From contig NC_133620.1 in NCBI RefSeq assembly GCF_048593235.1, positions 291,167,765 to 291,231,764 of the forward strand: DNA of 64,000 nt, read 5' to 3'. Every line of letters starts with the position of its first letter. Position 1 is the first letter of the stretch. Below the pieces are notes generated by a model. It was not told the origin of the DNA. It worked only from the letters and a program-made list of their open reading frames with translations, and did not search any database. This DNA is from Sminthopsis crassicaudata. Taxonomy: Eukaryota. A program made the position numbers and the translations under genes. This document shows positions 17,190 to 47,644 of this stretch, in pieces.

Positions 17190-17447
17190 GAAACTGAACT
17201 AAATCCATAACTGAATAGAAAGGGAACTGAGCTAGATCCAGTATTGAGTCAGAAGATGAAATTAGTGTTGTTCTCAATTTTCAATTCCTTCACCTATCGC
17301 TTCTGTTCTTTGTGCCTCTGTTACTCTAGGCTAGTATTTTAGGCCATCACACAAATCACCAAACCTGTGCTAAAACATTTAGGATGGCAATGATATGACT
17401 AAGAAGTTAGGATATAACTAAGGTAGGTGTTGGGAGCCTCAATCTCT

Positions 17448-18218: not shown

Positions 18219-18266
<48 letters not shown>

Positions 18267-18518
18267 ACACTGCTGGATCAAAGGGTATGCACAGTTTGAT
18301 AACTCTTTGAGCATAATTCCAAATTGCTCTCTAGAATGGCTGAATGTATGCACAATTCAACAATAATGTATCAGTGTCCCAATTTTCCCACATCCCCTCC
18401 AACATTCTGCATTATCTTTCCCTGTCATTCTAGCTAATCTGACAGGTGTGTAGTGGTATCTGAGTTGTCTTAATTTGCATTTCTCTGATTAATAATGACT
18501 TGGAGCATCTTTTCATAT
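17448..18518 (-). mobile_element. 5'-truncated LINE-1 (3' end)
   Basis: Reverse complement of the same ORF2 C-terminus/3'UTR family as 7722-8812. TSD GGGAGCCTCAATCTCT (17432-17447) / GGGAGCTGCAATCTCT (18519-18534). Confidence 0.93.
18183..18266. repeat. (TAG)n microsatellite inside L1
   Basis: Near-pure AGT/TAG trinucleotide run with two interruptions. Confidence 0.97.
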
Positions 18519-19335
18519 GGGAGCTGCAATCTCTAAGCTGATTGGCAAAGCCCAGCACTCATGCAGGAACATTTCCTTCTATGATTCTCATTAGTGGACT
18601 ACTATTTCCTATATTATTTATAATTGGCTTGATTGTAGCACTAAAACATTATCTAAAAAAATCTGGTGACAAGGGGAATTTGGGCAAGTTAACTAGAAAT
18701 GATTCCACATGCATATTCTGTCCTAATAAAACTAATCTCTCACTGAGACAAATGATAAAGGGGAGAACACCATGGAAAGCATTGTCACTATCAGAGAGAA
18801 TCCAAAGATCAAAAAAATAATAGTGTTTACCAACTTAGACTCAGAAAAGATCAGTAACCAAAAGATGGTTAAAGTATAACTAAGAATTCCCCTAAATGCC
18901 TATGTACACAGTTCCAAGTCAGGGAAATAGAGGAATCAAACAATCCATAGAATTGATAAAAAAGACATAACAAAATTCACTGACATTTAACCTTGTATAT
19001 CATTTGCCTTTCATTATTGGCTTCGAATAATGTAATCAATAATTCACACTTAACCAAAAAAAACTTACTCAAATATTAAATGTCAAATATAGTAACACAT
19101 AAAGGTCAATAATTCACATATCTGAAGACTATGTTGACCTAAAGAAAAATATATAATCATGATATAGTATAAAATAAAGCCTAAACGAGCCTGAGAGAAG
19201 TAGGAGCATCACTTCCATCTCAAACCACCCCACAACTCCTGTTTTCCTTTGACACCGACCCTATTCCTCCCACTCAACCCCCTGGACCCCCTGCAGAGGC
19301 TGGACCTCTGCAGGTAGGCAACCAACTGTTATTTT

Positions 19336-19479
19336 TTTTTCCTCCCCTGAGGCTAGGGTTAAGTGACTTGCCCAGGGTCACACAACTTGGAAGTGTTAAG
19401 TGTCTGAGATCACATTTGAACTCGGGTCCTCCTGAATTCAAGGCTGGTGCTCTATCCACTGTGCCACCTAGCTGCCCCC
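19336..19479 (-). mobile_element. WSINE1-like SINE
   Basis: Full antisense SINE with poly-T. TSD CCA(A/G)CTGTTATTTT on both sides. Confidence 0.92.
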
Positions 19480-19585
19480 ATCCAGCTGTTATTTTAATAC
19501 AGAAGTTGAGGAGGGTATATTCTTACTTATTATGGCTGGCTATTTTTTGTCTATTAGTTGATTTAGTTCATAATTTTAACAACTT

Positions 19586-19667
19586 GGGGGCAGCTAGGTG
19601 GCGCAGTGGATAGAGTACCAGCCTTCAATTCAGGAGGACCCGAGTTCAAATGTGATCTCAGACACTT
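19586..19667 (+). mobile_element. WSINE1-like SINE 5' part running into a gap
   Basis: GGGGGCAGCTAGGTGGCGCAGTGGATAGAG...GAGTTCAAAT, then N. Confidence 0.9.
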
Positions 19668-19806
19668 NNNNNNNNNNNNNNNNNNNNNNNNNNNNNNNNN
19701 NNNNNNNNNNNNNNNNNNNNNNNNNNNNNNNNNNNNNNNNNNNNNNNNNNNNNNNNNNNNNNNNNNNNNNNNNNNNNNNNNNNNNNNNNNNNNNNNNNNN
19801 NNNNNN
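19668..19806. other. assembly gap (139 N)
   Basis: Run of N. Confidence 1.
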
Positions 19807-19809
19807 TTC

Positions 19810-20790
19810 TATTAGTATAATCAAATCATATGATTTATATCATCTCAATTCCAATGATCCCAGATCTTTATATCCAGCTCTCATCTCTTTCCAGAACACC
19901 AGTTCTGCATCACAATCTTGCAACTGGACTTCTACCTGGATGTCCCATAAATATCTCCAAATCAACATGTCCCAAATAGAGCTCATTATCTTTTCCCTTA
20001 AATTTCCTCAATTATTTCTTTTGAGAATACCACCAATCTCCCAATCATCTAAATACACAATCCTTTCCCTAGCCTTACCTCACATTATATAAGCAGTTAC
20101 CAAGATTTACCTTCACTTCTCAACTCTACTAAGCCAATTGTTCTTATCTCCACTCATATGGTCTAATTCCATTCATACCATCCTCTCTCTAAACTATTTA
20201 CAAGTTTCCAAATTGTTATCATAGCTTTCATTCTCTACCCCTCTTCAAACCATCCTCCACACAGTTAGTAAAATAATCCTCCTAAAGCAGAAGTTTGACC
20301 ACAGGGCCAGCCACATAAGATCATTAATGTGTATTAATTAAATGTCCAAAAACCTTCAGCATCTCTTCATTGTCCCTAGGATACAGTACAAATTCCCTAG
20401 ACAGCCATTTAAGACATTCCCAATATTTACTTTCCCAGCCTCATTTCAAACAACTTCCATTCGTGAATTTCACATTTTAGCTAAACTGGACTTCTAACCA
20501 TTCCATGAACTCCTTATCTATCCCTCCTCTATTCACATATAAGCCATTTCCCATGCCTCAAATGCACTAATTATCTGTACTTCTTAGCATCCTTCTCATA
20601 CTTCAATGCTCAACTCTATTGCTAACTCCTCTATAAAGTCTTTCTGACAATTACTGACCTCTCCTTTTTTTCGTACTATTCTTGTCCTCCAAGTATTAAT
20701 GTAAACTTCTTGAGAATATGCAATGCCATGTTTTTTTAGTCTTCACGTCAAAAGTCCCTAATAAAGTGTTAGGCATACAGTAAGCACTTT
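19810..20790. mobile_element. ancient LINE-2 fragment(s)
   Basis: TCTACCTGGATGTCCCAT...CAACATGTCCCAAATAGAGCTCATTATCTT is typical L2 3' sequence; highly diverged. Confidence 0.6.
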
Positions 20791-22061
20791 TCATTAAATT
20801 CTCCTGTTACCAAAGCCCACTCCTAAAGCCACTCCTATCTTTGAGGAACAAAATATCAATGGACATGACAAGGCCTTCCAGTTTTCCTCTGCCTAGCCCA
20901 GAATTGCCCGTCAGAGGCCTTCTCTGAGCTGATCATTTTGTCCAAGTATATGTCCAGGAATCTTTAGACACTATTACTATATCCAAATTTCAGACCCCTT
21001 ACTTTGAAAATATTTTTCTCTAGGTTCTTGGGTCCCAGTCTGATTTTCTCACTACCACCACCCAATGTTTCCACTTCAGAACTGACATTTCTCAACTCAA
21101 GCCTAATCTAAGACTGATCCTGTTATTTTTCCTTTTCTTTACTAGCCCCTCAAGGAAATATAGCTTTCTAAGAATATTTATTAGTGACAAAAAGAACAGA
21201 CTGAGAGGAAAATTCCCAAGAAGTTGTTAGCTTTGAGGTTAGAAAAGGGGACTCCAAAAGTCTGGGGTCATAGACTGGTGTCATGAGGTGTCTCAAAAGA
21301 ATTAGCAGGCTTTAGCCAAGGGGCAAACTTTATTGTAAGAGTAACACCATTACATAAGTCTGGAATTCTAAGAGAATTTAGCAGAGAAACAGAAGCAAGG
21401 AGGCACATATATCCAGCTTTCAATCATTGGCATTCTAAGACTCAGGAGTGGTCTCCAGAATTTGGTTCTCACTGACCAGCAGATTATCACTATTGTCAGG
21501 AGTTTGGTCCAAGGGATTATCCTAAGGCCAGAAGCTATCTAACAGTCAGCAATGAATTGAGGAGTAATCTATTTAAAATCAGACAGATTGTTGTTCTTAG
21601 ATTTGGAGTGTGGGAAGTCCCTGAGGCAGACTCCAAAGTCAGAAGATTTAGGATTACTGACTTATTATTAGAAGAGAAACACCCCCTAAAATCAGGGAAC
21701 CACAAAATCATATTATATCATTAAAATTTAAAGCCTTCCAAGTTGAATGTCAAATTTTGAGTGGATTGCAAAATTCACTATCCAGCCTGATTTCCGCAGA
21801 GTTCTAAGTTATTTATGTCCTGCTCAATCTCTTCATTTCTCCTTTAATATCTCAATGGAAATCTAAAATCTCTCTTTCAGATTGGGAGGTTCTGCCCCTG
21901 CATTCTTTTGCATTTCTATTGTTCCTAGAAGAAAATAGAAAGATTATGTACAATATTTACTCTGATATGACAGCTGAGGTCAGAATCATCTGAATAATTT
22001 AAGAGAGATCAAACAGCCATGTCTGCCCCTGAACACAAGGAAATAAGTAATATACCAAATG

Positions 22062-22218
22062 GGGGGCATCTAGGTGGCGCGGTGGATAGAGCACCAGCCT
22101 TGAATTCAGGAGGACCCGAGTTCAAATCTGGTCTCAGACACTTAACACTTCTTAGCTGTGTGACCCTGGGCAAGTCACTTAACCCTAGCCTCAGAAAAAG
22201 AAAGAAAAAAAAAAAAAT
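22062..22218 (+). mobile_element. WSINE1-like SINE
   Basis: Full SINE with A-rich tail, flanked by ATACCAAATGGG / ATACCACATGGG. Confidence 0.92.
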
Positions 22219-22435
22219 AGTATACCACATGGGTTTTGAAATTAGGGTTACATAATCAATTTTATTTTCAGATCCCCATTCTCTCCCTCCCACTCATGCT
22301 CTACCCTCCATTGAGAAAGCAAGAAACACAAAATCCCTGTTCTTAAGAGTTTGGCAGAGGGAAAGAGGGATGAAGGTCCCAAGTGAACCAAATTGGAGGG
22401 GATGCATGAACTCATTTGATTTACTCAACCTGTAG

Positions 22436-22549
22436 ATTTTGAGGGACAGCTCTGTGAGGTGGACACAGATGAATGTGCATCAGAGCCCTGCCAGCACTAG
22501 GGCATCTCCCATGATCAACAGAGCAGTTTCTTGTGTATCTGCCTTCCTG
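22436..22549 (+). pseudogene. NOTCH4: NOTCH4 exon 9 remnant (EGF)
   Basis: 114 nt, AG/GT. FEGQLCEVDTDECASEPCQH*GISHDQQSSFLCICLP; TAG at 22498-22500. Confidence 0.95.
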
Positions 22550-22714
22550 GTGAGTTTCTCATACCTGTACTATCACTACCACCACCCATGCCCTAAATGC
22601 CCTAAATACTCCTTACTCTGGAACTCCAGCCTCCTTCACTCTGAACTCCCTATTACCACATAACCTCAACACCTGCCTCCCTATAAAACAATCCCCACTT
22701 CCTCAAACCCCTTC

Positions 22715-23203
22715 TGTAATGCCAGAGAAATAAGACAGAGATTAAAGGTTTTTAATATTTTAATTGTGGAAAGTTTGACTGTCAAAGCCAGCCAACTTGA
22801 ATGTGATTCTTGTCTCAAAATATTCATCGAAGATCAAATAATTCCAGAGACTTTTATAGGGCTCCAGCAATCAGTGAAACAAAGGGGGAGGAGCAGAGCA
22901 CTGATAGAGTGGAAATTCCAGGAAGGACCATAACTTTTTAATTCTGACAGGTTGGGGGTGAAGAATGAAGGATCACAAATTCTGATAAGTTGGGGGAGTG
23001 AAGAAGTTAGGAGACAAGAAGTCTGGGCCCAGGAGATGCCCAAGCATTTGAGATAAGCCATCTGGAGTTTCACAGCCCTAATTATCTCAGTCCTAATGGC
23101 CAGGAACAGGGGTGGAGGGGGATTTCCATCAGGGAAACTGAGGTAAAACAATTCAGGGAAACTGAAGCAAAACTATTCAGGGAATCTGAAGCATTATACT
23201 TCA
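22715..23203 (-). mobile_element. solo LTR-like repeat (antisense)
   Basis: TGTAAT...TTCA termini. Same family as the L1-split copy at 38699-39986. Confidence 0.65.
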
Positions 23204-23538
23204 AATCTCCCATCCCACCACTGACCACAAGTTGCCCTATACACAAGTTGTCTGTCTGTTTACTTAACTCTTATGCCCCCAATATTTATTTCTATCTTCT
23301 AACTACCTCCTCCGTGTCTTCTAGATTTCATTGTCTCTTCCTCCTCCTTTACCTCTATACCCTTTCTGCCTGAATCTCCTCTTTAGCCCTTATCCAGAAG
23401 CCCTTATCTTTTCCTCCAGCTTCTTTAGTTGTCCCTTCTATATTTTTGTTCCCAACATATTCCCAGAACATCTACATTCCTTGGGAAACTCTCCCAGATA
23501 CACCTTTTTAACTTTATCCCTTCCCACATTTACACTAG

Positions 23539-23658
23539 GTTTTACTGCCCCCCCCCCCTATTGTGAGGAGTATGTAGATGAGTATGCCAGTTTTCTATGT
23601 GCTCATGGTGGAATGTGCCAAGACCAGCTTGGGGCCTTTCATTGCCAACGTCCTTCAG
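23539..23658 (+). pseudogene. NOTCH4: NOTCH4 exon 10 remnant (EGF)
   Basis: AG/GT, 120 nt (C-run expanded by 6). FTAPPPPYCEEYVDEYASFLCAHGGMCQDQLGAFHCQRPS; two conserved Cys lost. Confidence 0.93.
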
Positions 23659-23787
23659 GTGAGAACTAGAGTAGGAGAGGAAGGGACAGAGCAGCAGGAT
23701 GCCTTAAAATTGTATGGGGCGGAAGAAGTTGTACATTTCAAAAGGTTTCAAATTTCAACTGCCTCCTTTTTTTCCCCACATATACAG

Positions 23788-23895
23788 GATTTGAAAGTTT
23801 TCAATGTCAGGTAGAAATAAATGAATGTCTTAGTGACCCCTGACTCTTAGGATCTAGCTGTCTTGATTTCCCTGGCTCCTTTTCCTGCCTCCCCA
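23788..23895 (+). pseudogene. NOTCH4: NOTCH4 exon 11 remnant (EGF)
   Basis: GFESFQCQVEINECLSDP*LLGSSCLDFPGSFSCL vs GFEGPRCQTEVDECLSDPCPVGASCLDLPGAFFCL. TGA at 23841-23843; 3' end and donor lost. Confidence 0.92.
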
Positions 23896-24187
23896 CACAC
23901 ACACAAATGTTATAGATCAGCAGGAAATTGGATTAAAAATAAAAGATACTTGAATTATATTGAGGATTAAAGGAGTGGGGGAAGACAAGAGAGACATTTT
24001 CAGAATGAGGTGAAAAGCACTGTGAGGTCAATATTAGTGTCAACTATTGTGCCCAGGATTCAGCTGGGAAAGACTGGGATTAGAGGACAAAGTTCTTGAG
24101 TGTATAGAGGCTAAGGGCCCCTTGATAGGTACATAGAAGATGACTCTGAAAGTCTGACTCTTCTGCCTTGTCTTTCATCTACCCTAA

Positions 24188-24338
24188 GACAAGTCTGTGA
24201 GTTCTTGTGCCCTCCCTCCTGTGGATGCCCTCCAAAGTGGGGATGGCAAACAGAAAACCACTGTCTCTACCCTGATGGAAACCCCAACTGTTCCCCTACC
24301 AAAGGCAACTGAATCTGTAAATATGGACAGTGCCAAAA
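24188..24338 (+). pseudogene. NOTCH4: NOTCH4 exon 12 remnant (EGF)
   Basis: GQVCEFLCPPSCGCPPKWGWQTENHCLYPDGNPNCSPTKGN*ICKYGQCQ vs GQLCEVPLC...ANCLCPDGSPGCAPPEDNCTCHHGHCQ. TGA at 24310-24312; acceptor reads AA, donor reads GC. Confidence 0.85.
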
Positions 24339-25126
24339 GCAATATCTCCCCACATTCCACTTCTAAACATTCCCTTTCATTGGGATTAGGAAGGAAACAA
24401 GGGAACATGGGCAATAGTGGGACAATTAGCAAATGGTCAACAGTGAGAGAACAGATGGTAGTGATTCCAGTAAAAAGTGAGATTCCCAATGTTCAGAGAT
24501 TTTCAGTTCTTTGAATAATCTTTCAGATTATTTGAAGTTCATAATCGGGTCACCCTTCAATTTTCATTATTAGATGCATCACTCAGAGAGAGAAAAGCCT
24601 TTGCCTCCAAGCTACACCCCCCCCATATCTCTACCTTGCCACCATTTGCACCTACAAATGTGGACGATGCTGAGAACCACAGACCTGGAAGGGACCGCAG
24701 AAGTCATCTAGTTGTACTCACTTTACTGATAAGGAAATTGAAGCTTAGCAATGTTAAGTGACTTGCCCAAGGTCCATAAATATTAACTGTCTGAGGCAAG
24801 ATTTGAACTCTGTTCTTCTGATTCCAAGCCCAGTAATCTATTCATTACCCCATGCTGCCTCTACCATAAGGAGGAAAGATCTTTTGGGTCAGAGCTGATG
24901 GTGGAAGAGATCTTTAGTTCTAGTCAATGGAAAAAAAAAACCAGTTATTTTGTTGAGAATATTTTGAAAAGGGAAAGTCAACTAAGAATTGAAATCAATA
25001 ACAAAGTCAATGGAAATAATCGGTCAGCAGCAAGGAGAGAAGGAAAGTCGGGTGGGGGTCGAATTGAAATGATTGATTTTCTCATACATATGTGTCCAAT
25101 ATACACACTTCTCCAGCCTCACCTAG

Positions 25127-25250
25127 AGCTACATGTGTGTGTGATGTGAGGAGGAGTTGGGAGGCTGTGTTTCAGAGCCTTGTGCCCATGGGAATACATG
25201 CCATTCCTGGTCTCATGGTTACAACTGCACCTACCCCAGTAGATACACAG
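25127..25250 (+). pseudogene. NOTCH4: NOTCH4 exon 13 remnant (EGF)
   Basis: ATCVCDV[22-nt frameshifting deletion]EELGGCVSEPCAHGNTCHSWSHGYNCTYPSRYT; AG/GT bounded. Confidence 0.95.
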
Positions 25251-25440
25251 GTGAGAACTCTTTTGACAACCTAAGGTCAAATTTTGGAGTGGGAAAAGAA
25301 AGGAAGGAAGGGAAGGGAAGACCTATAGGAATGGAGAAATAAAGAGGAATGGAAGGAAGATAAAAGAGGGGACATACTAGAAAGGAAGAAAAGGCAAAGA
25401 AACAAGTCTTCTGGGTTAGGCTTTTGGCTATTTATCTTAG

Positions 25441-25576
25441 GCTCTACCTGTCCTGAGGACCAGGCCATGTCTTACCAGTGGCTCCTGCAGCCCTACCCCT
25501 GAAGATAACTTCTGCATCTGCCTTCCTAATTATACTATATTCTATTGTCAGATCAGCATGGACCAGTGAACATCTG
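25441..25576 (+). pseudogene. NOTCH4: NOTCH4 exon 14 remnant (EGF)
   Basis: STCPED[17-nt deletion]RPCLTSGSCSPTPEDNFCICLPNYTIFYCQISMDQ*TS; TGA at 25567-25569. Confidence 0.92.
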
Positions 25577-25702
25577 GTGAGAGACTATTGTAGGCTAGGT
25601 ACTGAGCCAGTAGCATTGGCTGAGTTCAACTTGTCTAAGTACAATTAAGTAATGATTTATGTTGAATGGAATAAGAGACACTGTTCTAAACTTCTAAACT
25701 AA

Positions 25703-25853
25703 ACTCCCTAGATTTCTGTGCTCCAGATCCCTGTATTAGCCTACTGCTCCCAGCCTGACTCCTCCTTCCAATGTATTTGCCCTGGGGGCTAGACAGGTCC
25801 TCTCAGTGAACTGCCCCTCTTTCTCTCTCTGCTAAGTGGATGCCCTGAACCAA
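25703..25853 (+). pseudogene. NOTCH4: NOTCH4 exon 17 remnant (EGF); exons 15-16 absent from the 126-nt gap before it
   Basis: DFCAPDPC[shift]YCSQPDSSFQCICPGG*TGPLSELPL...DALNQ vs DLCAQKPC..HCLQTGPSFHCLCLQGWTGPLCNLPL...AALSQ. Trp to TAG at 25790-25792. Confidence 0.85.
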
Positions 25854-26249
25854 CATATCTATCCTAGGATCTATTTAGGTGGTCCATACTCAAAGGACTG
25901 GCCACCCATCAACCCAGATGATTATTAATGTGTTTATATGATGCTTTCAGGTTTAAAAAGCATTTTCTTCACAAATATCATTATCCCCATTATATAGATG
26001 AAAAAACTGAAGCTGAATGATTGTTTGTGATCACTTGTTTGAGAGTCATGACTCTTTCTAGTCCAACAATCTTTCCGTTATCACACAAGTTAATACACTA
26101 TTTCTTAAAACAAATCAACTTTAATTGACATAGTTCAAATACAGTCACAGCAGTTGGATATAATTTAGCTACACCTAACAAACTTCAACAAACCATAAGT
26201 CAATAACATTTCCAACTCAATATAATTGAACTCAAAATATTAAGAGTTG

Positions 26250-26880
26250 GAAGAAACCTTTAACATGATCTTGATGAGGTCAGGGAACCAAATGATGAAG
26301 TTCGAGAATTGGGGTGGGAGATCCCCTCTAGCTGACAAAAGAATTTACAAACCCAAAATCTGTGTGGCAAAAAGGGATTTATCGACACTGAGAAGACAGC
26401 TTGCTGGGAAGACAGCCTTCTTAGTGGACAGGGAATAAGCAAAGGTAGGTTACACTGAGAAGATAATATCTTTACTAGTAGGTATGGTCATGTTTAGGCT
26501 ATCTTCAAAGATTCAGGGTTGAGTTGTCTTTTATTAAGTGTCTGAGACTTGGGAGATTCAATTCAATTCAAAATTGAATGAGATTACTTAATTGGGAGTT
26601 TGAGTCAATGTTGACAATACCCCAGGCCTAGATTTCCAGTTGAAAAGAGATTACTTATTTTGGTAAGGGCTCGTCTGGGACCATTTAACTTGGGAAGGGC
26701 ATTGTCTGGGAAAAGTGTGCTTTTCCCAGGGGAGAGCTTGAGACTCCGAATCACCCTTCCCCCACAAATTAAAGGGACATAGTTTACATCAGCCTGATTC
26801 AACACCCTATTGTACAAAAGAGGAAAAATAATTTCCAAGGCCCTATAGCTACTTAATGGCATGAACTATAAGATTCAAAC
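26250..26880 (-). mobile_element. LTR-like repeat(s)
   Basis: Shares GATCC...AAAAGAATT(T/C)ACAAACC...GTGGCAAAAA with 12973-13100. Reverse polyA signal TTTTATT at ~26530. Confidence 0.5.
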
Positions 26881-27365
26881 TCAGATCTTATAATTTTAAG
26901 TCTAGGACTCTCAGTACAACCCAGATAACCCAAAACAAGCCAACTAATAATAGTAATAACACAAAGCAATCACCATCAATATAGTTCAATCTTCGTGAAT
27001 ACACCTCAATCACTCCCAAGACAACATAACCATAGTCAACTACATTAAACTCAGAAGAAAATAGCCCCATACAATATAACTACATCCTATATTCTTGGAG
27101 TTATAGAAAATTTTTCATTTAATAGATACCATCTATCTCTCATAATCTTCAGGGAGGGGCAGGCAGATTGTGATTTTAATCTATTGCCTGCCAAGGTTTC
27201 CTAGGCTCAGAAAAATTCTCTGCTTAAACCAGGAATGTAAGAGAATGGTTATTTTCCCTTCTAGTTAAGTTTCTCACTGATTTTATCTAAACATTCCGTT
27301 GGGCAGATCCCTCCTCACTTCTTTTATGATATCCCTCCCCCCTTTTTTTTTCCACCTCTCCCTAG

Positions 27366-27548
27366 GCATAGATATCTCTTCCTTGTGTCAGAATGGAGGG
27401 CTCTGCATGGACGATAGGATGTTCCATTTCTGAAAGTGCCCACCTGGGTTCCAAGGCAGCTCATGCCAGGATAAAGTAAATGTATGTGAGTTGAGGCCCT
27501 GCCAGCGGGGCTACATGTTTGACGCGTCCCAATGGGTACTTCTGCCAG
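27366..27548 (+). pseudogene. NOTCH4: NOTCH4 exon 18 remnant (EGF)
   Basis: [45 protein letters not shown][2-nt deletion][17 protein letters not shown] at 27431-27433; donor reads ATGAG instead of GTGAG. Confidence 0.96.
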
Positions 27549-27653
27549 ATGAGAGGGGCTGAGGTACAAGAAAGATTCAGGGAGCTTAGAGGAGTGGGAA
27601 TACAGTCATATTGATGCAGTTCTAGTGGTAGAGAACTGAGGTGTGAGAATTGA

Positions 27654-28128
27654 TGTGAGAATCCCCTCTGGACTCAGCACAGGTCCAATGTGAAAAGAAT
27701 TCAGGAACCTGAAATGTTAGTGGCAAGCAAGGAAGTTTTATTTTTCACTAAGAAGCTCTCTCTTAGCACAAATCTCTTAATGAGGAGATTTGCAAAGAAT
27801 GTGTTAACAGAAATTTATTTTATGAGCAAATCTTGGGGCTGGGGGCAGTTTGAGCTGATTATCAGATCAAGATATCCCAACTGAATGAAATCACTTTGAA
27901 GGCTTTTTCAGAATCTGGAATTTCCTGAATGAGGATCTGGCAACCAAAAAGATCAATGGAGGGTGATTTGCCCAAGAGCTCCAGTTGAATGATGCTGCTT
28001 ATCTTAGGAAAAGGCATTGGAAAATATGCCCCCTCCCAGGCTCACCCTGAATCTCCCTTCTTTTACAGATAAAAGGAAACAGTTTCAGAGTGACTGTTTT
28101 ACAGATTAAAGGTGACACAATTTCAGCA
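27654..28128 (-). mobile_element. solo LTR-like repeat (antisense)
   Basis: Same family as 12973-13484. Confidence 0.65.
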
Positions 28129-28760
28129 TTCATCCCAGTCAATATAAGGAACAACAAAGAGATGTTTGATCTGGGAGAAGACCTTAAGTTACAGAGTTGG
28201 AATAGTTGAGTGTTGAAGAGGGGGACAAGGAAATATGTTACCTAAAGTTTAGTTGTATAAAACAGGCATGTGTTTGTATGTTTTGTCATTATAATAAGAT
28301 GAATGACTTAAGACTAAGTCTGGATCCCGAGTTGAAATTAATAGATGGTGATAAGTTATGTTGAGTGAACAGAAGAATAATTGAGTTGTGGGGATATATA
28401 GGTAAAAATTATTTTATTTTAGATCTGGAAAGATCCTCAAAGATCACCTTAGTCCAAGTCCTTTTAATCTATAAATAGAAACAGGCCAAGAAAGAATAAA
28501 AGGGAGTTGCTCAAGTTAACAGTAGAGCCAATATTATAATTCAAGACTCCTTGACTCAATTCTTAGTTTGGTGCCTTTTCCATACACTCATTTGTTAAAC
28601 TGTTTTTAATCACGAATAGCATTATTGTATTGAATTTTGTGAAATTGCATTGAGTTATGTCAAACTGCATTAAATTATATTTGGTTGTAGTGATTTGTGC
28701 TGGGCTAATCATAGATTCACATTCCCTACCTCAGCCTGAGCTACCCTCCTGACTCCACAG

Positions 28761-28980
28761 TGTGCCCCTGACTATCATGAACAGAACTGTTCAGAGGTGG
28801 ATGCTTGTCAGTCTCAACCCTGCCATAATCATGGCATCTGTCCTTCAGTCTCTGGTGGCTTCCAATGTTCCTCTCCCCCAGGCTTTGTGGGACTCCTTTG
28901 TGAGGGTGATGTGGATGAATGCCTGGACTAGCCTTGCTATCCTGCAGGCACTGTGGCCTGTCATTCTCTGGTCAATGGAT
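28761..28980 (+). pseudogene. NOTCH4: NOTCH4 exon 19 remnant (EGF)
   Basis: CAPDYHEQNCSEVDACQSQPCHNHGICPSVSGGFQCSSPPGFVGLLCEGDVDECLD*PCYPAGTVACHSLVNG. TAG at 28929-28931; 3' end and donor lost. Confidence 0.96.
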
Positions 28981-29612
28981 ATTGAGGGCAGAAGTCAAAG
29001 ACAGGGAGACTGGAGTATGGATATCTTTGAGATACAACTAAAGAGTAAGAGAGAGCACAGCTGTAGAGTACGGGCTAGCTCCCTGGAGGGCCTCAGGGTC
29101 AGCCAGAGTCAGGATAAATTAAAATCCTTGGTCTTTGGGGAGAGAAGTGAAAGATGCAGGTAAGCAGAATCCTGGATTTGGGAGTCCAGAGTCACCAACT
29201 TCTCTCCTCCTTGTCCTGTGGCCAAGTGCCTCTGCCTCCTTCCCTCAGCCCTCTAATCCTTGCCTATGATGAACACCAAGAGCAAGCACCCACAGTGAGA
29301 AGAGCCATTTTTCCAAACATGTGCTAATAGAGTCATTGTCTCACATTGAATAGGTAATTAGCCGTAAGTGCTTGGTTGTCTGATTCGAGCACACCTTTTT
29401 GGAGTTTCAGCCCTCTACACAAAGCAACATCTCCTTCCATCCATCCCAATCCACTGCTGGGCTTCCTTCCCCTACATTCCACAATCCTTCTCTTCTAGGG
29501 AAGGAGACTTTGCCCATACCTCTCATTTCCAGCAGTAAATAGAAGAGAAAAATTTAAAAAGAAGTGTATGAAACACTGATTCTACACACTGGGGGCCATC
29601 CTCACATTCCAG

Positions 29613-29700
29613 GTCATCAGTGTGAGAAGCTGGATGCTTCCATGGTGGGACCAATGAAGTTATTGTTGGAAATCACCTTGGCTTCATGTGTCACTGTCCC
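29613..29700 (+). pseudogene. NOTCH4: NOTCH4 exon 20 remnant, copy A (left inversion arm)
   Basis: HQCEKL[19-nt deletion]CFHGGTNEVIVGNHLGFMCHCP; truncated at 29700 with no donor. Confidence 0.92.
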
Positions 29701-29753
29701 TTACTTCTTTCTCCATTGCTTCAGAGTCATTTGAGGGTATCTCCTGCTCTTAC

Positions 29754-29979
29754 TTGAGTCCAATACTATCTTCACCCAGAGGGGGCTGACATCTACAGGA
29801 GGCAGGTTTCGTTTGTGGTCGAGGCCTCCTGCAGAAACCAGAGGCCAGCCACAGAGTACCATGTTCCCGATGCCTTCTCCGGATAAGTTGGAAGACCAGG
29901 AGGCTCCTCAGAACTAGGAGAATCATCCCAGCCATTGGGGAACAGAACACAGACCAGGGAAGCTGAAGTGCTGAGGGTG
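29754..29979 (-). pseudogene. NOTCH4: NOTCH4 exon 24 (TM plus start of RAM), inverted
   Basis: AG/GT intact, open frame PSALQLPWSVFCSPMAGMILLVLRSLLVFQLIRRRHREHGTLWLASGFCRRPRPQTKPASCRCQPPLGEDSIGLK, on the strand opposite to exons 6-20A. Confidence 0.97.
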
Positions 29980-30336
29980 CTGGGGAACAGAAATGAAGTC
30001 TGAATCAGATAAAGATCCAGGAAGGCATACATGAAACAAATGTATCTTTTTAAGGAAGCTGTATGTAATACAGAGTGTCTAAACAGATAAACAGAGAAAT
30101 CGGGGTTAGTGGGAGGGGCAGAGAATCAGGGAGGGAGAAGAATCTCTCTACTGGCTATTCTGAGATTGTAGTCATTTTATTCCTTCTTGTGTAGGCATGA
30201 GTAAAATGATGTTCAACAGGTAGTTCTGGGAAAGGTGATAGATGAGTGTGGGATAAGATGGTTGAGAATCTGTGACTGGTCTAAGATGGAGGGAAAATTC
30301 AAGAGAAAATTAAAAGCTGAGGGTGATGGCATCTAC

Positions 30337-30472
30337 ATGTGCCTTCTTGCGGATAGGCAACTATCAGGGGCCCAACAGCAGCCATTGCAGCTAGGAAGTA
30401 GAGCAGAAAGCCTGGGGGGCAGGAGGGGCAGAATCACAGCAGGATGAATCTATCCCCAGCACCACCATAGAT
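30337..30472 (-). pseudogene. NOTCH4: NOTCH4 exon 23 remnant (HD-C), inverted
   Basis: SMVVLGIDSSCC...PGFLLYFLAAMAAVGPLIVAYPQEGT vs FVVVMGVDLSRC...PGLLLRFLAAMAAVG...PLLAVHPHAGT; internal deletions. Confidence 0.9.
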
Positions 30473-30560
30473 CTGTATGAGTGGAACCATAAACCCTTAA
30501 TTATTTGGGCACTGGTTAGTTGTCCCCTTCCCTAGCCTACTTTTTCTTAATCTTCCTTAC

Positions 30561-30720
30561 CCAGAAGAGAAGGTGTCAGTCTCTTTGCTGAACAGGTGTG
30601 TGTGGGGTACTGTTCTTTCATGTTGTGGTTGTTCCTATTTCTGTGAAGCTCTTCTTCCGTTTGTGGTCCAGGGTAAGGGTATACTATCTCTCTGCCTTTT
30701 TGGTCCCCTGAGGCCAGGAC
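30561..30720 (-). pseudogene. NOTCH4: NOTCH4 exon 22, 3' half (HD-N end), inverted; LNR-C part deleted
   Basis: GREIVYPYPGPQTEEEL...[shift]SKETDTFSSG|GTAAG vs GRDMVYPYPGARAEEKL...GKETDSLSAG. Confidence 0.88.
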
Positions 30721-30768
30721 CTGGGTTTGGCTGTTATGTTACCCTTTCTCTCCCCCAGTGTTCCTCAT

Positions 30769-31296
30769 GAGCAAATTTGGGGTGTCTCACAATTGCAGCC
30801 ATCAAACAGACACTCCTAAGTGTTGCACTGTGGGTGACATTGCCCATCTCTGAAGGGGAACCAGCATCAAGCATGGAGAGGACAGCCCTTCCGGGGATCT
30901 GTGATCCCCAGGGAATAATCTCCCCTATCCCAGGCACCATCGGGACTACTGCAGTCAGGATGACTGGCCCCATCTCCATATCGGCCTTTATATTCCTCTG
31001 CCTCTGATGTTTGGCATCAGGGTCCCAGGAACCCAGGGGGGCAGGAACAGTAGAAACTAGAGCTACAGGGTCCTTTTCTCCATGGGACTCTATGTAGCTG
31101 CCATCGTGTAGGCAAGGGGAAAGAGATCTACAACCCCGAGTGACTGGAGGAAGCAGGCAATCAGGACCCCCATAGCCTTTGAGGCAAACACAGTAAGGGA
31201 TAGATCCTGGATGGGAAAAAGATAGACAGAAGCCCCGTGATGGCAGTGGGGGGAGATACAGGAAGGGACATCATGGAGGCATGTGGGACCTTCAAA
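30769..31296 (-). pseudogene. NOTCH4: NOTCH4 exon 21 remnant (last EGFs plus LNR A/B), inverted
   Basis: FEGPTCLHDVPSCISPHCHHG[1-nt deletion]FCL..CLKGYGGPDCL..GP*CQ..GDGASHPDCSSPDGAWDRGDYSLGITDPRKGCPLHA*CWFPFRDGQCHPQCNT*ECLFDGCNCETP. Stops at 31017-31019, 30867-30869 and 30816-30818; acceptor and donor both lost. Confidence 0.96.
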
Positions 31297-31343
31297 GGGG
31301 GGGGGGGGAGTTAAGACTAAGGACTCTGGATAGCTCATTCTCT

Positions 31344-32330
31344 CTTTTAATTTTATAATTATAAAAAAATTTTTGACAGTGCATATGCATGAGTATTTTT
31401 TTATAACATTATCCCTTGTATTCATTTTTCCAAATTTTCCCCTCCTTCCCTCTACTCCCTCCCCTAGATGACAGGCAATCCCATACATTTTACATGTGTT
31501 ATAGTATAACCTAGATACAATATATGTGTGTAAATACCATTTTCTTGTTGCACTTTAAGAATTGGATTCCAAATGATGGACAGAAATAACTACACCCAGA
31601 GAAGGAACACTGGGAAGTGAATGTAAATTGTTAGCACTGCTGTCTATCTATCCAGGTTACTTATACCTTCGGAATCTAATACTTAATGTTCAACAAGAAA
31701 ATTGGATTTACACACATATATTGTATCTGGGTTATATTGTAACATATGTAAAATGTATGGGATTGCCTGTCATGGGGGGAGGGTGTGGTGGGAGGGGGGG
31801 ATAATTTGGAAAAATGAATACAAGGGATAATATTATTTTTTAAAAATTACTCATGCATATATATTGTGGGAAAAAATTCTAAATTTAAAAAAAAAAAAAA
31901 AAAAGAATTGGATTCCAAAGGTATAAGTAACCTGGGTAGGTAGACAGTAGTGCTAACAGTATACATTCATTTCCCAGTGTTCCTTCTCTGGGTGTAGCTG
32001 ATTCTGTCCATCATTGATCAATTGGAATTGGATTAGCTCTTCTCTATGTTGAAGATTTCCACTTCCATCAGAATACATCCTCATACAGTATTGTTGTTGC
32101 CGTGTATAATGATCTTCTGGTTCTGTTCATTTCACTCAGCATCAGACCATGTAAGTCTCTCCAAACCTCTCTGTATTCCTCCTGCTGGTCATTTCTTACA
32201 GAACAATAATATTCCATAACCTTCATATACCATAATTTACCCAACCATTCTCCAATTGATGGACATCCATTCATCTTCCAGCTTCTAGCCACTATGAAAA
32301 GAGCTGCCACAAACATTTTGGCACATACAG
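31344..32330 (-). mobile_element. 5'-truncated LINE-1 in NOTCH4 intron 20, interrupted by a nested L1
   Basis: ORF2 C-terminal ORF 32068-32316 plus 3'UTR. TSD TGGA(T/C)AGCTCATTCTCT at 31327-31343 and 32331-32347. Confidence 0.93.
31574..31902 (+). mobile_element. nested L1 3'UTR fragment with polyA, opposite orientation
   Basis: Perfect 17-bp TSD AAGAATTGGATTCCAAA at 31557-31573 and 31903-31919, preceded by TTT (L1 endonuclease-like site). Confidence 0.93.
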
Positions 32331-33451
32331 TGGACAGCTCATTCTCTATGGAACCTTTTTTTGTTTTTTTAGGGCTTGATAAATTGTTTTATTGACTATG
32401 TAAATGTAAAATAGGGATATAGAAAAATGCAAATAATACATATTAAACTTTAAAATTCATTTTGTGTATAATTTGTTTGAGAATTGGTTATTAAACATTT
32501 ACCAGCACACCCCTGACATATTTACAAAGCATATGCATGGGTAATTTTTCCAACATTGACCCTTGCAAAATCTGTTGTCTATAGAACTTTTTTCTACTTC
32601 CAAGGCAATACTTGTGATCAACTCACATTTTTATGGTACTCTTTTAAACACTAACCTTGTAAGGTGAGAGGTAGGGAAGGTTTTATTATGTTCACTTTAC
32701 TGAGAAAACTGAAGCTTAGGAGGTCATGTGACTTGCTTACTGTCGTCACACTGTATTGGTATCAGGATTTAAGCCTATTGGAATTTGTCTCCTTGCCCCG
32801 TGATTTTTCTGATGCATCATACAGCAACAATGTCAAGAGTTAGAAGGGACCTAAAGGTCACCTGACCAACTTCCTTATTTTATAGATAAAGAAGGCAAGC
32901 AGATAAGATGTGTAATATATGTAATATAGATAGTATGTACTATAGATAAAGAAGTGTAGCAGATAAGATACTGGACTCAGGCACCAGCTATATATGGTCG
33001 AGTTTCAACTTCAGTACAGTGGAGGTAGTTAATAATACTTGCTTCACAGAGCAGTTTTGAGGATCGAATGAGATAATATATGAAAGTGCTTTGTAAAGCT
33101 TAAAGTGATACATAAATGTTCATTATTATTGGTTGCAGAGCTGAGACAAGAACCCAGACTTTGTCACATAGCTTTACTGAGCCCACATTCTAATTATCAC
33201 CATTCACTTGTTCTTGATGTCCTGACGCCTCCACATTTTAGGCATATATGTTATATGTATACACATCTATGATACTGACTCCTGAACGCTCTCGCACAAG
33301 TCCTTCCCTGAGGATCTCCTCTTGTGCCTCTTTCTGGTAGTCCCCTCCTCCTGTAATTATGACCCTGATCTCCTTGGTTTTTTACTTTTTTTTTTTTTTT
33401 TTTAGTAGAAGTGACCAAGGTAGACTGTGGGATGAATGGGATTTGACTCGC

Positions 33452-33561
33452 CACGGGGCAGTGACACATGAAGCCAAGGTGATTTCCAACAATAACTTCA
33501 TTGGTCCCACTATGGAAGCAGGGCTGAATCTTGCAAGCACCCGGCTTCTCACACCGATGAC
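33452..33561 (-). pseudogene. NOTCH4: NOTCH4 exon 20 remnant, copy B (right inversion arm)
   Basis: AG-bounded, HRCEKPGACKIQPCFHSGTNEVIVGNHLGFMCHCPV, GC donor. Inverted near-duplicate of 29519-29700. Confidence 0.95.
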
Positions 33562-33689
33562 CTGGGAATGTGAGGATGGCCCCCCCGTGTGCAGAATCAG
33601 TGTTTCATACACTTCTTTCTTTACTTTTCTCTTCTATTTACTGCTGGAAATGAGAGGACCACAACCATAACACTCTTACTCTTTTATTG

Positions 33690-34100
33690 TTGTTCGCTTG
33701 CATTTTTTTTTTTACTCGTTTACTTTCCTTTTTGATCTGATTTTTCTTGCGCAGCAAGAGAGTTGTATATGTCTACACATATTGGATTTAACATATATTT
33801 TAGCATATACAACATATATTGGGGTTGCTTGCTATCTAGGGGAGGGGGTGGGGAAAGGAGGGGAAAATCTGAAACACAAGGCTCAATGTTGAAAAATTAT
33901 CCGAGGGGCAGCTAGGTGGCGCAGTGGATAGAGCACCAGCCCTGAATTCAGCAGGACCTGAGTTCAAATCTAATCTCAGACACTTAGCACTTCCTAGCTG
34001 TGTGACCCTGGGCAAGTCACTTAACCCCAGCCTCAGAGGGAAAAAAAAGAAGAAATTATCCGAGTACACGTTTTTGAAAATAAAAAGCTTTAATAATAAT
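33690..34100 (+). mobile_element. older L1 3'UTR fragment interrupted by a SINE
   Basis: GCTATCTAGGGGAGGGGGTGGG...AATGTTGAAAAATTATCC marsupial L1 3' end. Confidence 0.7.
33906..34052 (+). mobile_element. WSINE1-like SINE
   Basis: Full SINE. TSD AAATTATCCGAG at 33894-33905 and 34053-34064. Confidence 0.93.
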
Positions 34101-35324
34101 AAATAATAATTACAAAAAGTAAATTACAAGGCATTTTGAGGGGGGAGCAATCTTCTCGAAGGAAACAACTTTAACCAAGCCTTAAAAGAAGCTACAGGCA
34201 GAAGCAAAGAGGAAATCCAGGACGAACAGTCTGAAGAAAGGCCCAGACACAGGATACGGATTATCATATTTGGGGAGATTGTAGGAGAGCTTGTCTAGAA
34301 CAATAGCACATTAAAGAAAATAATATGAAATAAGTCGGGAAAGGCAGGATGGAGAAAATCTGTAGAAAGTTTGAACTATTAGGCTGAGAACAATTCTAGT
34401 CATTGGTTCAACGATTCCCTAAACAATTTTCGATAATTTAAATTATCCCTTCTAATTTCCATTTTAAAATTGGCTTAGAATCAGGGTACATTGCGCCCAT
34501 TCCTTTTCCTGCACCTCCACAATCTTCCACCACCCCGCATTTCTTATTTAATTTTATCTTTGCTTTTCCTATTTTTAAGGTATTAATAACTGTTATTTTC
34601 AGTCACCTTAACTACGATAAGATATCTATCATAAAAGGGTCATCAGTCACAGAAATTATCAGTAGCAAAGGTATTTTTCAGAACAGGGCTGTAACTGACA
34701 CAGACTGAACAAGGACGCCTTGTTCCTGTCACAGTCTCCATCACGATGATTCCGTGGATCCCAAGGGCGTCTTTCATTGCTCCGGGAGCCAGGGAGCGGG
34801 CGCGCGGGATGGTCCGGCCTCAGAGAGCGGGTCTGGTAACACCCGGACCGACTCTCCCTGCGCCGGATCCAGTACTGCGCTCCACCCAAGGTCCGTTTCG
34901 GTTGGATGGTGAGGGTGAAATCAGCCAGAGCGGGGAGGAAGTGCAGGCTCGGATAAGGGATAATTAAGGCAGCCAGACGTCAGCGTCAGGCTTTCCCTAA
35001 GGGAAAGGTGAATCCGGGGAGCAGACAGTCTGCCAGTCCCATCAGCGGGGAAAGCAGTGGGAAGGGAAGCAGGGGAAAGGGAGGGGGGGTGATGGAGAGG
35101 AGGGGGGTCCCTATCTCCCCGGCCACAAAACAAAGCCCCATTGTCTCCGAAGATCTGCACCCGTGCCATCTCCACGGCAAAGCTTCCCGCTCCTGACCAG
35201 CAGAGGGCGCCCCAAGCCAGCTCTAGCTGTCCCCCTAGCCCAGTCCTGAGAGAAACTTCTCGCAGACAGCTACCCCCAGGGACTCGAACCCGCCTCCGGA
35301 ACCCTCCCTTTGCCTCCCTGCCTG

Positions 35325-35393
35325 GCGGTGAGCAGTGCTCCGCCGCCAATGCCCTCTCCAGGTACGGGCAGACGAGGGCGCTCAGGACCGCAG
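35325..35393 (+). pseudogene. NOTCH4: NOTCH4 exon 29 remnant (ANK)
   Basis: AVSSA[-1]AANAL[-1]QVRADEGAQDR vs AVNNARAARSLLQAGADKDAQDNR. Confidence 0.75.
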
Positions 35394-35407
35394 TCAGACA
35401 GGGCCAA

Positions 35408-35528
35408 GTCTCTTTTTTTTGAGGCTGGGGTTAAGTGACTTGCCCAGGGTCACACAGCTAGGAAGTGTTATGTGTCTTGAGGCTGGATTTGAACTCAGGT
35501 CCTCCTGAATTCAGCACTGCACCACGTA
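35408..35528 (-). mobile_element. WSINE1-like SINE with internal deletion (NOTCH4 intron 29)
   Basis: Poly-T, then GAGGCTGGGGTTAAGTGACTTGCCCAGGGTCACACAGCTAGG...GATTTGAACTC. Confidence 0.88.
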
Positions 35529-35787
35529 GGGTGACGTCTCTTAAAGAGGGGGCAAAGTCCAAAGGGCGGCTGAAAAGGGGAAGGGGAGGAAGAGGCGGAA
35601 TGGGGAGGAGGAGGAGGAGGAGGAAGAAAAGGGAAAGGAAAAAGAAAGAAGGGAGAGGAGGGGGCAGAGAAAAAAAAGTCAGAGAGGAGGAAAACTGGGC
35701 GGAGTCAACACGTGACGTGGGGAGACGGAACGTCTAGGAGGACTCGCGCCTCCTGGGAGTGCCCTGCCCCCCCTCCACTCTACGCAG

Positions 35788-35908
35788 CTCTTCCGGACTG
35801 CCCGAGAAGGGGCAGTGGAAGTAGCTCGGGTGCTGCAGGACCAGGCCCCAAGACGCTGCTGGTCAGCGAGGACACGGGGGCCTGCTGACGCTCCTGGAAG
35901 AGGAAGGG
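35788..35908 (+). pseudogene. NOTCH4: NOTCH4 exon 30 remnant (last ANK repeats); weak similarity continues to ~36300
   Basis: LFRTAREGAVEVARVLQDQA[shift]DAAGQRGHGGLLTLLEEEG vs LFLAAREGAVEVAQLL...LRDQAGLAPADVAHQRNHWDLLTLLEGAG. Confidence 0.88.
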
Positions 35909-37354
35909 CTTCCAGAGTCCGGCCCTCTTTGCGTCACAAAGCCTCTCAGGATGGTGACAGGACCCGGAAAGCGCCTTCCGGCTCTCTAGGACGTTACTTG
36001 AGGGCGGGGCTTTTCTATGCGGCCGTATGACGTCGGAGGAAGAAATAGAAGCTTCCCCTCCCGGCCGAACAATGTCAGCGAATGTGACTCGGCATTGGGG
36101 CGCGGCCTGTCTTTGTAGCGGGAGCCTCTCCGGAGGCGGAGATTCCCCCCCTACGCGGCCTGAGGTGCCCAGCTAGCATGCGCGAAGCTCGACCCTGTCC
36201 TAGGTTACTACTGGATCGGCCCTGCGAACGACGAAAGTGAACTACAGTCACCCGGTCTTATGATTGGATCCCCAGAACTCCGGATCCCTCCCTCTTTTGA
36301 ACAAAGTTCCTCTATCCTCCTGTGTACCCAAACCTCGGAGTGATGCGCTAGGCTAAGCCGAGAAAGTACTGGGGATAAGGTGGGGGTGGGTAGGGATCTG
36401 ATGGATGCTGAAAGCAGCAGTCTGGGGACGACCCAAATTCTAGGCCATGAGGCTCTAGTGCAGGGAAACCCCCACAATGGAAATAGAGGGATGTGCCTGC
36501 ACCTAAAATAAGTGTTCACCCCCTTGACTGAACAATACTTTCCCTGAAATGGGAGAGAACCTCAGCTATGCCTTTCCTGCATTAAAATGGACACTGTATT
36601 ATCCTTCAAAGGGAGGGAGGGGGTGCGCAATACCATTATCACCATTGCCACCCCCCAAAAAAGATTAGGAGCCTGATGAGGAGCAAGGAGCAACAGAAAA
36701 AGGGACAAGCAAATCCCAAATACAGGGATGCTGGGAGACCCCAAAACTGGTGTGAGGATTGCCCCCAAAAGAAAGAAAAACAAGATATGAAATTGTTTTC
36801 CCTGTGCAGATGACTTCCCATGGGTGCCTGCCTCTGGAACAGTTCAAGTTTCTCCCCTTACCCTAGGATGAGATCACTTAAGGATGGAGCATCCAATCAT
36901 GTCCCCTCTATCCATAATGAACTAGATTCTGTTATCTCCTAATAAAGCTAAGTAGAGAAAGTGAGAGCGCATGACACATAATTGGAGTGGGACTTCTCAC
37001 ATGCTCCACCTCCCCTCCAAAAAAAGGAATGAATATTTCAAATGCTTGTAAAAAAAAAAAAAAAAACAACAAAACAACTTTGGGGTTCCCACAGAGAATC
37101 TGTCATTTATGGTCACAGCAATTAGATGTAAAACTTCTCAAACTATCTTCTTAACTCAATGGAGGAATCCAAATGCCACCTTATTCTTTGCTGACATTCC
37201 CTAATACAAATGCACAGTAGCCACTTAAATAACTAAAGGGCAGAAGTTAAGAAATTTGAAAAAAAAATTAGTATCTCTAAGGAGATGTCTACTGGTGGTC
37301 TGGCATTATAGTCATCTTGTTCAGGAATGAGAAACTACCTAATGCTTAGTAAAG

Positions 37355-40638: not shown

Positions 40639-41903
40639 ATGGAAACAGAGAGACTCCAGGAAGAAGACGGCGATGAGATTGAGCAGGTAAGAAGGGGAAA
40701 GTTGGGAGAAAAGCAAAAAGGAAAATAGGTACAAGACAACAAATTTAGACTTTTAGAGAGACAAGAGTATACAGAGAAACAATGCATTGGAATACCAAGC
40801 AGGCACTCTTTCTTGCCTGGAGATTTGCCTACCTGTGATTGAAGTACCTACCTATCATTTTCAGAGCCTGCCCCCAGATGATCAAGACTGGCCCCCTCTC
40901 AATACTATCAGACCTTGGAGATCTGCACCCCCAACTCCTCCTCATTCCAGGAATCAAAACCCAGGTAATCACTCTATTACTTCTCTGTGCTCTTTAAATC
41001 ATTACCTCAACCTTATTTTTGGCCTAAGTACCAATCTCAGATTTGATCCTAACCTCATTTATAAGACACTCGTTTCTAACTGGTACTCTCCCTCAATTAT
41101 TCCAGAATTTTCATCATCCCATTCCCTAACTGTAACAAACACACCTTTTACAATGCTCCAATATCCAGTCTCTCCATTTACAGCTTCTCCTATCCCTAAC
41201 TCCTCAACCTCCACATTTCTGATCCTCACCCCTACACATACTCCCCCAGCCCTAGGACCCCGCTCCGCCTCCATGCTCTCTCTGCAGACAGAACTCTTCT
41301 TGGACTTAGTAGCAGAAGCTCAGTCCAAAAGGCTTGAAGGACAGAGAGCCACCTTCCACATTTCCTCTGGCTCCCTAGCCACAGCCTCAGTCAGAGTCCA
41401 GGTTTCAGAGGACAAAGACCAACTCTACAGCACCATCCTCAGTCACCAGGTGAGACCAGAGCTTTCCTAACTTCCCTTAGGTATAAGATCCAGTCTGCCC
41501 CTCTGCCCTCAGATTCCCTTTTACACAGCACTCACTTCTCTAATGGACCCAGAAATCTGCATCATCCCCACCCCTCTACCCTTATCTGTTCTTATCCCCA
41601 CTTTTGCTCCCTTCAGAGAGAAAATCAGGTATCCAGCTCCAACCAGTTCTTGAATCTTCCCCTACCCAATCCCCTAACTCCAGTATATCATTCCCTCAGG
41701 AATTCCCTCAGACATCCAATTTCCCCCTCCCCTGCTCACCTTACCTCTACCCCCTTTCTCCCCAGTGCCAGCGTATTGAAGCTCAGCGCTCAGACCCACC
41801 TCTTCCACCAGGAGGGCAAGAGCTTCTGGAGCTGTTGTGGAGGGTGCAGGGAGATGGCCGAATGGAGGAGCAAAGATCCAGACCTCCTACACATAACTGC
41901 TGA
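40639..41903 (+). CDS. GPSM3: G-protein signalling modulator 3 (GoLoco protein, 161 aa)
   Basis: Exons 40639-40686, 40865-40964, 41250-41449, 41766-41903; all GT-AG, 486 nt. GoLoco motifs ELFLDLVAEAQSKRLEGQRA, QLYSTILSHQCQRIEAQRS, ELLELLWRVQGDGRMEEQRS. AATAAA at 42728. Confidence 0.97.
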
Positions 41904-47505: not shown

Positions 47506-47644
47506 NNNNNNNNNNNNNNNNNNNNNNNNNNNNNNNNNNNNNNNNNNNNNNNNNNNNNNNNNNNNNNNNNNNNNNNNNNNNNNNNNNNNNNNNNNNNNNN
47601 NNNNNNNNNNNNNNNNNNNNNNNNNNNNNNNNNNNNNNNNNNNN
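47506..47644. other. assembly gap (139 N) in the PBX2 3'UTR
   Basis: Run of N. Confidence 1.

Follow-up and report, generated by a model that had tools for sequence, protein, structure and literature searches.

The 64,000-nucleotide stretch of fat-tailed dunnart (Sminthopsis crassicaudata) chromosome CM109184.1 analysed here, hereafter the window, lies at the edge of class III of the major histocompatibility complex (MHC) and carries, in this order, NOTCH4, GPSM3 (exons 40649-41900), PBX2 and AGER. A dunnart locus reached through the GPSM3 protein (L001, GCA_048593235.1) matches 30639-51903 of the window at 100% identity. Its NOTCH4 copy has been rebuilt from within: the part from exon 20 to the beginning of intron 24 runs backwards, two inverted copies of exon 20 bracket it, and DNA is missing at its far end. 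We read this structure as an old and real germline inversion, with DNA duplicated at one of its breakpoints and missing at the second (dupINVdel), which probably arose in the dunnart (sminthopsine) lineage, in a NOTCH4 that was already dead, and through a single microhomology-assisted event. As exon reference we used alpaca NOTCH4, whose 30 coding exons were rebuilt from its genomic locus (L005), translate exactly to the 1990-amino acid (aa) protein and are collinear from exon 1 to exon 30. In the dunnart, exons 20B, 21, 22-23 and 24 follow one another in descending coordinates on the reverse strand and are thus inverted with respect to the collinear alpaca gene. A first-pass annotation of the same DNA had placed exons 6 to 20A on the forward strand, 24 to 20B on the reverse strand and 29-30 on the forward strand again, and mapping of the alpaca exons returns the same numbers and orientations. 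A search of the window gave no credible trace of exons 26-28, and for exon 25 a weak candidate only.

The two copies of exon 20 sit within arms that pair as an inverted repeat. A repeat search of the window paired 29519-29595 with 33581-33657 (92% identity) and 29635-29700 with 33455-33520 (97%), and a MAFFT alignment of 29519-29700 with the reverse complement of 33455-33657 contains 11 substitutions in 182 aligned bases (~94% identity), two 1-nt indels and one 19-nt gap, the latter in the left copy; both analyses agree with the earlier claim that the first of these segments recurs as a reverse complement at the second. The left arm, on the forward strand, consists of the last 94 nt of intron 19 followed by the 88 nt of exon 20A, while the right arm, on the reverse strand, consists of exon 20B and 96 nt of intron 19 (33562-33657). 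Both derive from gene sequence that was single-copy in the ancestor, namely exon 20 with the 96 nt of intron 19 before it, and each retains one ancestral neighbor: intron 19 and exon 19 on the left side of the left arm, intron 20 and exon 21 next to the right arm on the reverse strand. The 19 nt absent from exon 20A (29634/29635, versus 33521-33539 in exon 20B) lay between TGCTT direct repeats and their loss shifts the frame; this is a textbook slippage deletion, which took place after the duplication and in copy A only.

No repetitive element is common to both breakpoints: in the repeat search of the window only the arms pair across them, and nothing at the left inner junction pairs with the L1 element found at the right outer one. 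Since no transposable element is common to the two breakpoints, ectopic recombination is not the cause, and the earlier exclusion of an exchange mediated by transposable elements, which had been argued from the arms being unique gene sequence, stands. Nonallelic homologous recombination between inverted repeats was also considered and rejected, as there is no repeat pair at the junctions, exon 20 is single-copy in alpaca, and the corresponding gene products of four non-dasyurid marsupials are of normal length (1971-1978 aa). An intact outgroup NOTCH4 already carrying a duplicated exon 20, one of the observations that the first-pass annotation had named as speaking against its proposal, is not what alpaca shows.

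At the left inner junction (29700/29701) exon 20A breaks off 3 nt ahead of where the exon is inferred to end and meets inverted intron 24 at position +53. The dunnart sequence is CCC GTG/GCGAGT against CCC CAG/GTGAGT in alpaca, and a junction exactly at the exon 20 boundary was rejected, as the inferred boundary is 3 nt further downstream. Both partners are near 5' splice sites, one 3 nt before the exon 20 end and the other 53 nt into intron 24; we nonetheless give hardly any credence to the idea that the breaks or switches were nonrandom and linked to the transcription or splicing of a still-transcribed pseudogene, for example by R-loops or by complexes stalled at donor sites.

At the right outer junction (33657/33658) the reverse complement of intron 19 at -96 meets the 3' untranslated region (UTR) of an L1. 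The family identity of this element comes from a sister copy encoding the C terminus of ORF2p (residues 1191-1261, E = 1.5e-13 in a search of PDB sequences); a Pfam search did not recognize the L1 ORF2 C terminus. The junction L1 has an orthologue in Antechinus, with 3' tail and downstream flank alike, and the short interspersed element (SINE) at 33906-34070 in the tail of the dunnart copy is absent from it. The Antechinus L1 runs on unbroken past the junction point, at least 1.3 kb further 5', to at least position ~1230 of the Antechinus locus (L002), which extends upstream from GPSM3 for 10 kb and breaks off within L1 sequence. Because the Antechinus L1 is intact across that point, it is the right outer junction of the dunnart lineage that represents the derived state. 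Furthermore, DNA was lost at this second breakpoint, since the L1 is truncated relative to Antechinus and intron 24 stops at +53; the missing part would extend from intron 24 +53 to the point in the L1 and include at least 1.3 kb of L1 together with whatever lay upstream of it. The window holds no orthologous-grade copy of the missing 5' part of the L1, and the L1 fragments of intron 20 (31343-32330) were rejected as candidates for it, as they have a 3' UTR of their own and match the Antechinus element at 77%. The features of the rearranged gene and its surroundings are collected in Table 1.

Table 1. Remnants of NOTCH4 and inserted elements along the window (coordinates from the first letter of the 64,000-nucleotide stretch; + forward, - reverse strand)
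Feature	Position	Strand	Basis or remark
Exons 6, 7, 9-14, 17-19	13564-28982	+	Mapping of alpaca exons onto the window
Exon 19	28758-28982	+	Alpaca exon mapping
Exon 20A	29613-29700	+	Alpaca exon mapping
Intron 24, first 53 nt (GTAAGAGCAGG...), inverted	29701-29753	-	Alpaca exon 24 and exon 20 boundaries
Exon 24 (start of transmembrane (TM)/RAM part, ends GEDSIGLK)	29754-29977	-	68% identity to alpaca, open frame
Exons 22-23, remnants (heterodimerization domain)	30338-30705	-	Alpaca mapping; in-frame stops
Exon 21 (EGF repeats and LNR-A/B)	30768-31329	-	Three in-frame stops, cysteines lost
L1 fragments within intron 20	31343-32330	not assigned	Inside the inverted segment, away from the junctions
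L1 ORF2 C terminus within intron 20	32071-32388	-	Sequence match
Exon 20B, 110 nt, open frame	33452-33561	-	Alpaca exon mapping
L1 3' UTR, truncated at the right outer junction	33658-33905	+	Orthologous to the Antechinus L1 (L002 2529-2821)
SINE in L1 tail	33906-34070	+	12-nt target-site duplication AAATTATCCGAG
Exon 25, candidate remnant	34733-34882	+	Weak match, GVFHCSGSQ versus GVVMCSGPE
Exon 29, remnant (AANAL...)	35340-35400 (approximate)	+	Aligns with Antechinus exon 29 remnant (L002 4651-4716)
Exon 30, remnant with stops	35782-36267	+	Alpaca exon mapping

Several observations argue that the rearrangement belongs to the genome and not to its assembly. There are no runs of N near the junctions, the closest being those at 19668-19806 and 47506-47644 and none lying within 9 kb. 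In the 60-nt stretch 33628-33687 every word spans the right outer junction, and all three of the 31-mers sampled from it (share 1.00) are present in independently built contigs of six DNA sequencing runs, which belong to two samples and studies of S. crassicaudata and contain 0.67-0.78 of the words across 28800-34400; the junction at ~33657, for which confirmation had been called for, is thereby found outside the assembly. A mis-oriented piece or a haplotype chimera would have to account for arms that are 6% diverged and differ by a 19-nt indel, which a single mis-oriented exon 20 could not yield, and for an interior that consists of the proper downstream exons in reverse, with no fold-back. 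Such an artefact could draw on the reach of the read check, which is confined to the right outer junction, and on the chance that the samples with the right outer junction include the source of the assembly itself; with the arms diverged, gaps absent and the right-junction 31-mers in six runs, it is very improbable, and we treat the inversion as real.

The gene into which the inversion fell has many in-frame stops and lost cysteines. Two of the cysteine losses are common to the dunnart and the Tasmanian devil (exon 6, SATYA for AATCA; exon 7, KAQHSTN for EAQCSTN), and within the duplicated segment the third EGF cysteine is replaced by asparagine (GTN for GSC) in both arms, a lesion that predates the duplication because both arms carry it. 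Judged from these lesions, NOTCH4 was already a pseudogene when the inversion occurred. The inversion did not kill NOTCH4, and it had no functional consequence because the gene was dead. The first-pass annotation had stressed that the rearrangement parts the ectodomain exons from the TM/RAM exon: the arrangement is indeed present, but any effect of it is moot because the gene had decayed beforehand.

The age of the event can be gauged from the arms themselves, whose Kimura two-parameter divergence is 0.0635 (11/182; 95% range for p 0.030-0.108). In the flanking noncoding DNA the divergence is 0.081-0.098 between dunnart and Antechinus, 0.082 between dunnart and devil and 0.065 between Antechinus and devil, and published crown ages are 20.6-28.6 Ma for Dasyuridae, 16.7-22.9 Ma for Dasyurinae and 16.5-22.8 Ma for Sminthopsinae (Kealy and Beck 2017, PMC5715987). 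On these values the event would be ~18 million years (Ma) old, loosely 8-30 Ma, an estimate that would be too low if the arms underwent gene conversion. This age fits an origin in the sminthopsine lineage, after its split from Antechinus and the devil.

A clue to how the structure came about lies at the right outer junction, where a near-homology is found (GGAAATGA-GAGG versus GGAAATGAATGTGG). The arm ends in ...GGAAATGAGAGG and the L1 reads ...GGAAATGAATGTGG/AC, so that a 2-nt overlap (GG) stands beside an 8-nt identical block (8+3 near-homology), which points to annealing-assisted joining or template switching and not to blunt joining after fill-in. In the event that we favor, four points of the ancestral locus would have been involved, namely intron 19 at -96, exon 20 at 3 nt before its end, intron 24 at +53 and, further downstream, the L1 3' UTR. 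The DNA from exon 20 to intron 24 +53 now runs backwards, and the ~200 bp that separate the first two points stand at both ends in opposite orientation. Repair would have taken place in one event, with either joining assisted by microhomology or two template switches during replication, where the first would lead from forward synthesis up to the end of exon 20 onto the other strand, from intron 24 +53 back to intron 19 -96, and the second from intron 19 -96 forward into the L1. The outcome has the makeup of a dupINVdel, with the arms duplicated at one breakpoint and, at the other, a deletion to which the truncated L1 and the truncated intron 24 both point.

The first-pass annotation had proposed another route, taking inverted duplications at the ends of an inversion as the hallmark of staggered breaks described in Drosophila and deducing a ~180-bp staggered cut at exon 20. 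The pattern does match the Drosophila cases of Ranz 2007 (PMC1885836), where a duplication at one breakpoint was found in 12 of 18 cases, with duplicate sizes of 46 bp to 1.9 kb and a median of 321 bp (minimum 46 bp). Nicks ~200 nt apart around exon 20 would leave an overhang that is filled in, and with a second break downstream the segment would be rejoined in reverse by nonhomologous end joining; the order left flank, arm, inverted middle, inverted arm, right flank, the unique arms made of gene sequence and not of repeats, their size within the published range and the restriction of the duplication to one breakpoint are all as this model has them. At the same time, the staggered-break class is conservative, with nothing lost, whereas here the L1 is cut and intron 24 ends at +53, so that the model also has to allow for the loss of at least 1.3 kb at the second breakpoint. 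That loss could be supplied by variants of the model with resection, with breaks offset between sister chromatids (a version that itself predicts reciprocal deletions) or with a later independent deletion. The 8+3-nt near-homology is unexpected for blunt joining after fill-in, and the unwinding of a 200-nt duplex is a difficulty conceded by the authors of the model (PMC1885836). Because the final products of a staggered break and of template switching are identical, sequence alone cannot separate the two; repair with microhomology or template switching explains the structure at least as well as a staggered break does, and we regard the latter as possible but rather doubtful. The ~180-bp cut is plausible and in keeping with the Drosophila pattern, but the evidence also allows other routes, and the loss of DNA and the near-homology had both been missed.

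A route in several steps can also be drawn, where an inverted copy of exon 20 was inserted downstream, the intervening segment was flipped by recombination between the copies and a deletion next to the left arm followed. Inverted repeats of ~200 bp can in principle mediate flipping, and the region is unstable in dasyurids, as seen from a 5.9-kb deletion in the devil and from L1 and SINE insertions. This route would, however, take three independent events, including a deletion that ends exactly where the arm homology ends, and beside the left inner junction there is no trace of the 5' part of the L1 or of exons 26-28; we consider it improbable.

Returning to the single microhomology-assisted event in the sminthopsine lineage, the following points weigh against it. 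The test of the near-homology, where an equally good match occurs at a frequency of 0.0008 in 200,000 random window pairs and of 0.010 when the Antechinus base is used (GGAACTGA), was made post hoc, and its p-value hinges on that one base by which the Antechinus orthologue differs. The near-homology concerns the right outer junction only, and the deletion may be a later, separate event that abuts the junction. The read support is likewise confined to the right outer junction, and the Antechinus comparison to the L1 and the DNA downstream of it. Finally, the devil is uninformative on the inversion because the whole region is deleted there.

That deletion is seen in both devil assemblies, which jump from the equivalent of window position 28465 to that of 34372 with only an unrelated L1 scrap in between, a loss of ~5.9 kb in dunnart coordinates (L004 15577-15860) that spans exons 19-24 and the L1. 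The devil is also without window 21312-27006. The two pseudogenes are alike in that each is a dead gene upstream of PBX2 and AGER and in the cysteine losses of exons 6 and 7, and unlike in the extent of the devil loss, which runs from intron 18 past the L1 and takes with it both arms and the inverted segment; pseudogene decay differs between dasyurid lineages. In two independent devil annotations, GPSM3 isoforms P0244 (199 aa) and P0242 (238 aa) have N termini that are the NOTCH4 exon 18 remnant (L003 10001 onward, L004 14473-14668), and these gene models suggest that the dead devil NOTCH4 may still be transcribed and spliced onto GPSM3.

A NOTCH4 pseudogene has already been listed in the devil MHC, on bacterial artificial chromosome C12G5 (Cheng et al. 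2012, PMC3414760). In opossum, Gracilinanus, wombat and bilby a gene of 1971-1978 aa lies on the same strand and ends ~3 kb upstream of GPSM3, and alpaca NOTCH4 occupies the same position relative to GPSM3; by size and position, we infer that these marsupial genes are NOTCH4. A search for NOTCH4 homologues listed eutherian, platypus and reptile NOTCH4 and no marsupial protein. No gene is called at the equivalent place in the dunnart, Antechinus or the devil, and the loss of NOTCH4 seems to go back to the dasyurid stem; for the devil it is partly in the literature.

Some further observations concern the remaining parts of the dunnart locus. A G+C-rich stretch at 34740-36360 covers the exon 29-30 remnants, ~4-6 kb before the coding exons of GPSM3, and may be an upstream promoter of that gene and not a relic of NOTCH4. 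An out-of-frame open reading frame (ORF) of 178 aa (30737-31270, reverse strand) crosses the LNR part of exon 21. The hits of a search with it were for the most part short ORFs, off frame, in the LNR region of NOTCH4 from other mammals, besides one usable NOTCH4, and the similar off-frame ORFs of the protein library (P0001-P0009, 83-182 aa) are probably mis-called on the NOTCH4 of other mammals, that is, database artefacts rather than genes. Ten ORFs of the window around the junctions have no exact match in the protein collection.

Set beside known systems, the dunnart inversion is a new example of a known and ordinary type of complex rearrangement, located in a pseudogene. As in the fixed inversions of Drosophila, its flanks are inverted copies of single-copy breakpoint sequence (182-203 bp in the dunnart, within the Drosophila range), the copies decay by substitutions and small deletions and no repeat is common to the breakpoints. 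Unlike those cases, it is 4 kb long and intragenic, it lies in a marsupial pseudogene, at least 1.3 kb has been lost at the other breakpoint, and one of its junctions falls in an L1 3' UTR, with near-homology. What it has in common with the human dupINVdel and delINVdup rearrangements is that DNA is duplicated at one breakpoint and deleted at the second. Human inversions flanked by copy-number variants, including dupINVdel, have been attributed to microhomology-mediated break-induced replication or fork stalling and template switching (MMBIR/FoSTeS), or to simultaneous repair of double-strand breaks (Collins et al. 2017, PMC5338099). Those dupINVdel cases are large, polymorphic or de novo, and were seen in jumping libraries, whereas the dunnart one is small, old and apparently fixed, resolved to the base and ~18 million years diverged.

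A mammalian inversion with breakpoint duplication and deletion, known at base resolution, is of modest importance in itself. Its structure has been preserved for ~18 million years because it lies in neutral DNA, and old, resolved cases of this kind help to compare staggered-break and template-switch explanations outside Drosophila and human disease. The loss of NOTCH4, which appears to go back to the dasyurid stem, is the more interesting biology and a separate finding. For the dunnart and its relatives, the two novel junctions constitute a clean rare genomic change, of possible use as a phylogenetic marker for Sminthopsinae.

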